Positions 7,391 through 8,184 of a stretch of 64,000 nt of DNA are shown here, piece after piece. Both the position numbers and the translations under genes were made by a program. How positions within the stretch are numbered: the stretch's first letter is position 1; each line of letters opens with the position of its first letter. The notes beneath the pieces were generated by a model. That model worked only from the letters and a program-made list of their open reading frames with translations, was not told the DNA's origin and did not search any database. The stretch is from Eukaryota sp. TZLM1-RC (taxonomy: Eukaryota; Protista; Metamonada: BaSk clade), in NCBI GenBank assembly GCA_040285825.1, contig JAUPSS010000002.1, positions 2,728,001 through 2,792,000 of the forward strand, written 5' to 3'.

Positions 7391-7515
7391 TTCCAGTTTT
7401 TTAAAAACCAAATTCTGTGACACCAATAGTTGAAATAGAATAAAATTCTTCATTATTTTCACAACATCTGATTCTCACTCATGTCTATGTGTTCTGTATG
7501 TTAACCTCCTTCAAT

Positions 7516-7588
7516 GTGTTGTGATGAATGTGTAGTTTATGATCAGTTGTGATTATTCTGTTACATCTTACCTACGTTCTCTGACGCA
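7516..7588 (+). ncRNA. Box C/D snoRNA, U34/snR62-like
   Basis: C box GTGATGA 7521-7527, D' ATGA 7539, C' GTGATTA 7549, D CTGA 7581-7584. Guide CTTACCTACGTTCT is complementary to the LSU AAYGUAGGUAAG segment, with the +5 register matching U34. Confidence 0.75.
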
Positions 7589-7667
7589 ATCATTTTCATC
7601 TTTCATTCACCTCAGTAAGTTAGATTCAGAATGCCTCATGTTGATGTTTGTTCAACCCCTCAGCCCA

Positions 7668-7740
7668 TCATGATGATTAACTATGCTCTTGGTCCGTGTT
7701 TCTGACATTTGATGAAAGGAGCTTCGTTGTGACTGATTTT
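7668..7740 (+). ncRNA. SNORD18: Box C/D snoRNA U18/snR18 homologue, copy 1
   Basis: C ATGATGA 7670, guide CTTGGTCCGTGTTT + D' CTGA 7702 (antisense to the conserved LSU GAAACACGGACCAAG), C' TTGATGA 7709, D CTGA 7733. Confidence 0.9.
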
Positions 7741-7893
7741 TTCTTTTTTGAAAGTAACATCTTACCTCAGACAGCTTCAACGGCTACATAAGTCGTCAAC
7801 TTTGATCATCTTTTGTGGTCACTATTTGGCTTTTATGTTAAAATAACTCATTTTGCTCAATAGTAATCATGTACGTTCATTTTCTTTTTTCTT

Positions 7894-7966
7894 TCATGAT
7901 GATTAACTATGCTCTTGGTCCGTGTTTCTGACATTTGATGAAAGGAGCTTCGTTGTGACTGATTTT
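7894..7966 (+). ncRNA. SNORD18: Box C/D snoRNA U18/snR18 homologue, copy 2 (identical to copy 1)
   Basis: Exact ~73-nt copy: C 7896, D' 7928, D 7959. Flanking intron sequence differs. Confidence 0.9.
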
Positions 7967-8184
7967 CACCTTTTGAAAAGTTCTAACCACAGTTATATAA
8001 TAAACCATCTTATTTTATTTTGTGATGAATCACTACATTGACACTACACTATATTGACAATGATATTGGTTGTTAAATGATAATGTTGCTTTTCTTTAAA
8101 CTGTTTTTTAAACTGTAGATGTTCAAAAGATACCAGCTTTGTATGACATCTTGTGCTTGAATTCAAACCATTCTCAAACTTAAC

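Follow-up and report, generated by a model that had tools for sequence, protein, structure and literature searches.

Can a metamonad maintain a gene whose useful products are small nucleolar RNAs (snoRNAs) carried in its introns, an arrangement held unlikely in Metamonada, where introns are few and tiny (PMC3228867)? The question is raised by positions 7440 to 8030 of a 64,000-nucleotide (nt) stretch of DNA, here called the window, which is identical to part of contig JAUPSS010000002.1 of assembly GCA_040285825.1 (record position is window position plus 2,728,000). The DNA most likely comes from Skoliomonas litria, a free-living metamonad whose clade is the sister group of Fornicata. The closest proteins, at 55 to 67% identity, are those of “Eukaryota sp. 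TZLM3-RCL” and “GEM-RC1,” i.e., the Skoliomonas strains RCL and GEMRC described by Williams et al. in 2024 (PMC11316075). The locus contains three consecutive GT..AG intervals, each enclosing one C/D snoRNA, and it is quite probable that these are real snoRNA-bearing introns. We favor, with distinctly less assurance, an independent noncoding host gene of the UHG/GAS5 kind as the explanation of the whole locus.

The three intervals are of almost equal length and share one layout. Predicted intron 1 (7496 to 7615, + strand, 120 nt) opens with the donor GTATGTTAA (GTATGT) and closes with TTCAC, whose A at 7609 lies at position −7, and the acceptor CAG. Predicted intron 2 (7646 to 7770, + strand, 125 nt) opens with GTTTGTTCA (GTTTGT) and closes with CTTAC (A at 7764, position −7) and CAG, and predicted intron 3 (7871 to 7992, + strand, 122 nt) opens with GTACGTTCA (GTACGT) and closes with CTAAC (A at 7986, position −7) and CAG. 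Read slightly further, introns 1, 2, and 3 start with GTATGTT, GTTTGTT, and GTACGTT and end with TTCACCTCAG, CTTACCTCAG, and CTAACCACAG, respectively. The C box (RTGATGA) begins at intron position 26, 25, and 26, leaving 25, 24, and 25 nt before it, and the end of the D box (CTGA) lies 31, 34, and 30 nt from the acceptor. These coordinates and spacings, given in an earlier reading of the stretch (the original prediction), were confirmed by reading and by script, and each interval does hold a single C/D snoRNA with canonical C, D', C', and D boxes.

Splice signals were calibrated on annotated genes around the window whose range exceeds their coding length by 29 to 32 nt; each of these had one frame-keeping GT..AG solution or one GT donor among two solutions. 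In the SERCA gene of the same contig (locus L121), both exons flanking a 32-nt intron (10494 to 10525) agree with the deposited protein at every residue, including the one encoded by the split codon; the other S. litria genes with such micro-introns lie at 1015 to 3445 and 3451 to 4625 of the same locus. The three calibrating introns (GTTTGT..CTTACCCTAG, GTATGT..CTCACTTCAG, and GTATGTT..CTCATATCAG), all from protein-coding genes, give a GTWTGT donor and a YTNA(−7)YNNYAG tail, a rule also followed by four of the six introns inferred in two relatives. All three snoRNA intervals fit this code, save for a C in place of T at donor position 4 of intron 3. The earlier proposal that introns lie hidden at these positions is thus supported, in that their predicted signals match those of micro-introns of the same genome.

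The arrangement is far from chance. With motif densities taken from both strands of the window, and with donor and tail placed in 30-nt zones around the snoRNA, the chance expectation for the frame is 5 × 10−4 per snoRNA and 3 × 10−7 for two independent cassettes. Three of the 11 occurrences of the extended donor GTWYGTTMA in 128 kb fall at this locus, as do 3 of the 14 occurrences of ACCWCAG. Beyond these three cases, the pattern of donor, C box, D box, and acceptor was found on neither strand of the window nor in ∼110 kb sampled from strains RCL and GEMRC (DNAI1 loci L001 and L002 and SERCA loci L122 and L123). Loose GT..AG scans of the window returned many chance matches, none with C/D boxes and none joining open reading frames (ORFs). 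One candidate examined separately, GTATGTTCA at 13950 on the − strand, upstream of a Tom22-like gene, was rejected as being without a proper branch motif.

The independent cassettes number two, not three, as introns 2 and 3 hold the same snoRNA and one cassette must have been duplicated. The 73 nt at 7668 to 7740 are identical to those at 7894 to 7966, within a repeat of 88 nt at 94% identity and a period of 226 nt. As paralogues, introns 2 and 3 have conserved the snoRNA and ∼20 nt 3' of it, and their 5' flanks have diverged beyond alignment; both nevertheless retain a GTWYGTTCA start, an ACCWCAG end, and the spacing. This bears on an alternative in which no splicing occurs: the three snoRNAs would be a tandem cluster, transcribed singly or as one precursor and released by endo- and exonucleases, the GT..AG frames being incidental. 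Such processing is known in plants, trypanosomes, Dictyostelium, and Giardia. Nonintronic, clustered C/D genes are the rule in many protists (PMC8817022), and intronic snoRNAs have been judged “highly unlikely” in Giardia and Trichomonas (PMC3228867). Incidental frames would nevertheless have to match a code derived from independent introns, at the chance stated above for each snoRNA; the extended donor and the branch/acceptor motifs would have to be kept in diverged paralogues for no reason of splicing; and public annotation already removes an interval coinciding with intron 1. We give an unspliced cluster very little credence.

The annotation in question places at 7481 to 7673 a gene with a product of 23 residues, which begins at an ATG and ends at a TGA within the C box of the first U18 copy (the snoRNA of intron 2). 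A product of this length needs the removal of 121 nt, within one base of intron 1, or of a 120-nt intron with a 5'-partial frame, and the annotated model corresponds to exon 1, exon 2, and the start of an unspliced intron 2. The published annotation pipeline for the S. litria genome used RNA sequencing (RNA-seq) intron hints (PMC11316075), and the 23-residue model therefore probably stems from reads in which intron 1 had been spliced out and intron 2 had not. The “protein” itself is almost certainly an artifact of ORF calling on a noncoding RNA.

What do the predicted introns carry? The snoRNA of intron 1 (7515 to 7588, + strand), with a guide of the snR62/U34 type, has its C box at 7521 to 7527 (GTGATGA), D' box at 7539 to 7542 (ATGA), C' box at 7549 to 7555 (GTGATTA), and D box at 7581 to 7584 (CTGA), and its ends can form a terminal stem of 4 bp between TGTG (7515 to 7518) and CGCA (7585 to 7588). 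U18 copy 1, in intron 2 (7668 to 7740, + strand), has a C box at 7670 to 7676 (ATGATGA), a guide at 7687 to 7701, a D' box at 7702 to 7705 (CTGA), a C' box at 7710 to 7715 (TGATGA), and a D box at 7733 to 7736 (CTGA). U18 copy 2, in intron 3 (7894 to 7966, + strand), is copy 1 shifted by 226 nt, with C, D', C', and D boxes at 7896 to 7902, 7928 to 7931, 7936 to 7941, and 7959 to 7962. When the introns and snoRNAs were folded, no structure was significant and none was better than that of shuffled sequence.

The assignment of the second snoRNA to U18, made in the original prediction, holds. Its D' guide, directly 5' of the D' box, is complementary to AAACACGGACCAAG and forms 13 Watson-Crick pairs and one G·U pair with AAACACGGACCAAGG, and the fifth position (T7697) pairs with the A preceding CGG in AAACACGG, the U18-site A of large-subunit (LSU) rRNA (AAACACGGACC). 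That site corresponds to Am649 in yeast and Am1313 in human (PMC8817022, PMC3511168). The guide also pairs with AAACACGGACCAAGG at all 116 fetched loci, a result true by construction because this 14-nt pattern was used to fetch them; the LSU rDNA contigs retrieved with it are eukaryotic and from metagenomes, and the organism's own rRNA is not among them. In a 1-kb search with Rfam SNORD18 (RF00093), both copies gave full-length matches, of 33.7 bits for copy 1 and 32.3 bits for copy 2 (E values of 3 × 10−4 and 6 × 10−4), i.e., below the gathering score, and in a search of the whole window against Rfam nothing reached a gathering score. For the 17-nt D guide of U18, the rDNA contigs held no rRNA site recurring at a constant position, and the same was found for the 11-nt D' guide of the intron 1 snoRNA.

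The D guide of the intron 1 snoRNA (∼7567 to 7580) forms 12 bp with the LSU motif AAYGUAGGUAAG, which we take to be the Um1888 site itself (yeast, snR62; human Um2824, U34). In 18 eukaryotic LSU rDNA contigs, this motif lies 1224 to 1426 nt 3' of the U18 site. The distance agrees with that published between the U18 and snR62/U34 sites, i.e., 1239 nt in yeast (Am649 to Um1888), 1235 nt in Arabidopsis, and 1326 nt in Dictyostelium (PMC8817022), and the motif therefore fits the snR62/U34 site. The target nucleotide stands opposite G7576, with which a U in the rRNA would form a G·U pair and a C, the base present in one contig (L103), a Watson-Crick pair; because the target faces G, the organism's rRNA is expected to have C there. 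Rfam does not join in this assignment: SNORD34/snR62 gave no match at an E value of ≤10, even when only 91 nt were searched, and the snoRNA drew only weak, unrelated C/D matches and is claimed by no family. The earlier call of a U34/snR62 guide is thus supported by guide complementarity and by position in the LSU rRNA and not by the family model.

Is the RNA from which these introns would be removed a coding one? Putative exon 1 (7440 to 7495, + strand) ends at the donor, TCT/GTATGT, and its start at 7440 is a guess of the original prediction. Exon 2 (7616 to 7645, + strand, 30 nt) is bounded by the acceptor of intron 1 (7615) and the donor of intron 2 (7646) and has TAA as its first codon in frame 0; exon 3 (7771 to 7870, + strand, 100 nt) contains stop codons in all three frames; and the putative last exon (7993 to 8030, + strand) includes AATAAA at 8000 to 8005. 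Frames were tracked exon by exon, with the exons kept separate. Reading from the exon 1 ATGs at 7481 and 7487 runs into the stop at the first codon of exon 2, the stops of exon 3 leave no ORF able to cross it, and the longest ORF possible after splicing is 27 codons, from ATG 7638. The internal exons thus lack coding capacity, as had been proposed.

A saposin-like gene begins at 8185, also on the + strand, and the four exons could instead be the long 5' untranslated region (UTR) of its mRNA, with the snoRNAs in 5'-UTR introns. The shared strand and the short interval of 192 nt from the last acceptor (7992) to the saposin ATG (8185) fit such a leader, and the 3' end assigned to the host RNA is a putative one. 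The joined exons would, however, make a UTR of ∼380 nt with eleven upstream ATGs, AATAAA starts 8 nt past the last acceptor, and the saposin gene is annotated without an upstream exon. Of 16 genes, 4 have AATAAA ≤35 nt after the stop codon, where 5.5% would be expected. Further evidence against a shared transcript comes from a 22-nt motif, TAAACTGTAGATRTTCAAMAGA, upstream of both the saposin gene (8109 to 8130) and the next gene (8845 to 8866), which encodes a GAF/receiver protein. The first copy, TAAACTGTAGATGTTCAAAAGA, lies ∼115 nt past AATAAA and recurs almost unchanged as the second; its consensus is TAAACTGTAGAT(G/A)TTCAA(A/C)AGA, and the distance from motif to ATG is 75 nt for the saposin gene and 26 nt for the GAF/receiver gene. 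An exact 11-mer of it has three copies in the window (within 8109 to 8130 and 8845 to 8866 and at 59734 to 59744), and shorter YTGTAGA or CTGTAAGA strings precede the SERCA gene, the Tom22-like gene, and a gene of 381 amino acids. In this species, the motif may serve as a core promoter or initiator element. AATAAA and the separate upstream motif together weakly suggest that transcription of the saposin gene starts independently, beyond the end of the host RNA, and we consider a 5'-UTR origin of the exons unlikely. On the 5' side, retrotransposon similarity stops at 7364.

Several points weigh against an independent host gene with spliced, snoRNA-bearing introns, and we gather them here. No promoter for exon 1 was identified, and a look-up of the saposin protein returned the genome contig only, with no transcript contigs on record. 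No canonical GT/GC-AG intron yields 23 codons from ATG 7481. The C at donor position 4 of intron 3 is unlike any of the three calibrating introns, and the repeated geometry comes from only two independent cassettes. Both U18 matches to Rfam fall short of the gathering score of 41 bits. The U18 copies are without a terminal stem, and intronic C/D snoRNAs of this kind are known (cited in PMC8817022). Finally, no orthologous locus was found in the sampled ∼110 kb from two relatives.

We propose that the locus is a small RNA polymerase II gene without protein-coding capacity, with four short exons, a spliced host RNA of roughly 200 to 250 nt, and three introns as its useful products. Intron 1 would supply the guide for LSU Um1888 (yeast, snR62) or Um2824 (human, U34), and introns 2 and 3 would supply identical U18 copies guiding methylation at Am649 (yeast) or Am1313 (human). 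To excise the introns, the spliceosome would use the signals of the lineage: GTWYGTT as donor, a branch A at a constant 7 nt from the intron end, and CAG as acceptor. Exonucleases would trim the debranched lariats from both ends up to the assembled small nucleolar ribonucleoprotein (snoRNP), and the spliced exons would be thrown away. Of the earlier comparison with UHG/GAS5-type hosts, the one snoRNA per consecutive intron and the absence of a long ORF stand; such hosts, described there as best known from animals, exist in fungi as well.

A different route of release could apply even if the introns are spliced. Yeast U18 undergoes Rnt1-type cleavage, and here too the snoRNAs might be freed mainly by endonucleolytic cleavage of the unspliced precursor, with splicing and release in competition. 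The absence of a terminal stem from U18 would suit such a route, as would a small conserved hairpin-like element (CTTTT..GAAAG) in the 3' flanks of introns 2 and 3 and the annotated model, which leaves intron 2 unspliced up to 7673. Against this, the introns fold with energies no better than shuffled sequence does (z-scores of 0.03 to 0.41), and no cleavage signal was identified; we regard predominant release by cleavage as improbable, to about the same degree as an unspliced cluster.

The geometry that the original prediction had described as compact and fixed is indeed compact and near constant, and the splicing-coupled snoRNP assembly read into it would rest on two independent cassettes. 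The donor lies 24 to 25 nt from the C box and the D box ends 24 to 28 nt from the branch A, and in the micro-introns the donor lies 22 to 25 nt from the branch. The likeness of these distances suggests a minimal design in which the snoRNA sits between two spliceosomal footprints. A bolder version, to which we attach only a low probability, is that, for a spliceosome adapted to micro-introns of 29 to 32 nt with a constant distance from branch to acceptor, the snoRNP acts as a clamp that makes a 120-nt intron spliceable: C/D pairing would join the two flanks of ∼20 to 25 nt, the path from donor to branch would become micro-intron-like, and dedicated noncoding arrays of this kind would be the general route for C/D snoRNAs in the lineage. 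Splicing would then require prior assembly of the snoRNP, opposite to the coupling seen in mammals. For longer metamonad introns, it has been proposed that internal pairing draws the splice sites together (PMC6679479), and by analogy the snoRNP may do so here.

Host genes of similar design are found in distant lineages. Like vertebrate UHG, GAS5, and SNHG and Drosophila dUHG, the proposed gene has a single C/D snoRNA in each intron and short exons that hold no meaningful ORF, and its exon-plus-intron units have been duplicated in tandem, with the snoRNA as the product and the spliced RNA as the by-product. In animals, such hosts are independent, polyadenylated RNA polymerase II transcripts with a 5'-TOP start. 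In contrast to the UHG, GAS5, and SNHG genes, its introns are ∼120 nt long, only 24 to 28 nt separate the end of the D box from the branch A, branch point and 3' splice site are fused with the A at a fixed −7, and the lineage is Metamonada. In mammals, the optimal position of the snoRNA is ∼50 nt upstream of the branch point and is linked to Aquarius/IBP160 (PMC8162545).

Noncoding one-snoRNA-per-intron hosts are not confined to animals: clusters I to V of Neurospora crassa are noncoding hosts with ORFs of only 159 to 267 bp, one C/D snoRNA per intron, and splicing shown by reverse transcription-PCR (PMC2780460). The S. litria locus resembles them in belonging to a microbial eukaryote, in its noncoding host with one C/D snoRNA per intron, and in its intronic U18 (PMC2780460). 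It differs in that Neurospora is fairly intron rich, with introns of ordinary size and splicing established experimentally; here ordinary introns are 29 to 32 nt, the snoRNA introns are outliers, and their splicing is predicted from the sequence.

U18 resides in an intron of EFB1 in yeast and in an intron of a gene for a ribosomal protein in vertebrates. The S. litria copies are likewise intronic and use the same D' guide for the same target (Am649/Am1313); unlike these relatives in protein-coding hosts, they would have a noncoding host, are present as two identical copies, and carry an extra 17-nt D guide.

In Giardia, Spironucleus, and Trichomonas, the branch point is as a rule fused with the 3' splice site (PMC6679479), and introns of these genera share with the present ones an extended GTATGTT-type donor, an invariant distance from branch A to 3' splice site, and two size classes. 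Unlike the Giardia consensus (VCTRACACRCAG), which places the branch A at −8, S. litria has it at −7 (YTNAC-NNYAG). No snoRNA has been reported inside introns of Giardia, Spironucleus, or Trichomonas (PMC3228867).

Do introns persist in this genome for the sake of snoRNAs? Three of 11 nontransposon genes sampled around the window in S. litria contain a 29- to 32-nt intron. In the two relatives, about a fifth of the sampled genes have introns, and those in the RPS10, kinesin, Ku, and ATPase genes of GEMRC and RCL measure 26 to 48 nt. The genome is therefore intron poor rather than nearly intron free, as had been claimed, and the proposal that introns are retained specifically to release snoRNAs fails because protein-coding genes have them as well. 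What sets the snoRNA introns apart is size, approximately four times that of ordinary introns (∼120 nt versus 29 to 32 nt). The DNAI1 loci of RCL and GEMRC have no synteny with the window, no U18 or snoRNA 1 guide, and no cassette; the SERCA loci of both relatives were also negative for the guides and cassettes, and the GAF/receiver neighbor has no detectable homologue.

To our knowledge, neither intron-encoded snoRNAs nor a UHG-like noncoding host gene has previously been known in Metamonada, and if our interpretation is correct, this locus would provide the first of both. The locus would then also be a natural test case for the space that a snoRNP requires beside the branch point (∼25 nt here versus ∼50 nt in mammals) and for the question of whether introns are protected by a functional-RNA cargo, and made four times as large, where other introns of the genome shrink to ∼30 nt. 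Together, the calibrated splice code and the cassette geometry yield a simple pattern with which snoRNAs can be annotated in the genomes of skoliomonads and barthelonids, and the analysis flags the annotated 23-residue “protein” as an artifact.

Some smaller features of the locus and its surroundings deserve mention. A possible fourth cassette at 8018 to 8120 was rejected: it has a C-box-like GTGATGA (8021 to 8027) and internal TGAT repeats but is without a CTGA D box or a donor, its Rfam match to snR51 is weak (E value of 4.2), and its fold is worse than that of shuffled sequence. The C-box-like stretch is probably due to chance or a decayed fourth cassette, and the “acceptor-like” AAACTGTAG in the 8018 to 8120 region is better taken as a shared upstream motif. 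The 3' part of exon 3 (7841 to 7870, ACTCATTTTGCTCAATAGTAATCAT) faintly resembles the end of intron 1 with exon 2 (7600 to 7645, TTTCATTCACCTCAGTAAG...GTTGAT), and an acceptor may have been copied along in the 226-nt duplication and have decayed afterward (CCTCAG to GCTCAA). A proteasome-type AAA ATPase of strain GEMRC (L122, 15610 to 16809, − strand) is called as two adjacent genes 75 nt apart, an OB domain of 166 amino acids and an AAA domain of 207 amino acids, and could represent a missed intron or a frameshift. Elsewhere in the window, a single uninterrupted ORF of 9592 codons (26389 to 55167, − strand), a giant protein gene, occupies almost half of the sequence.

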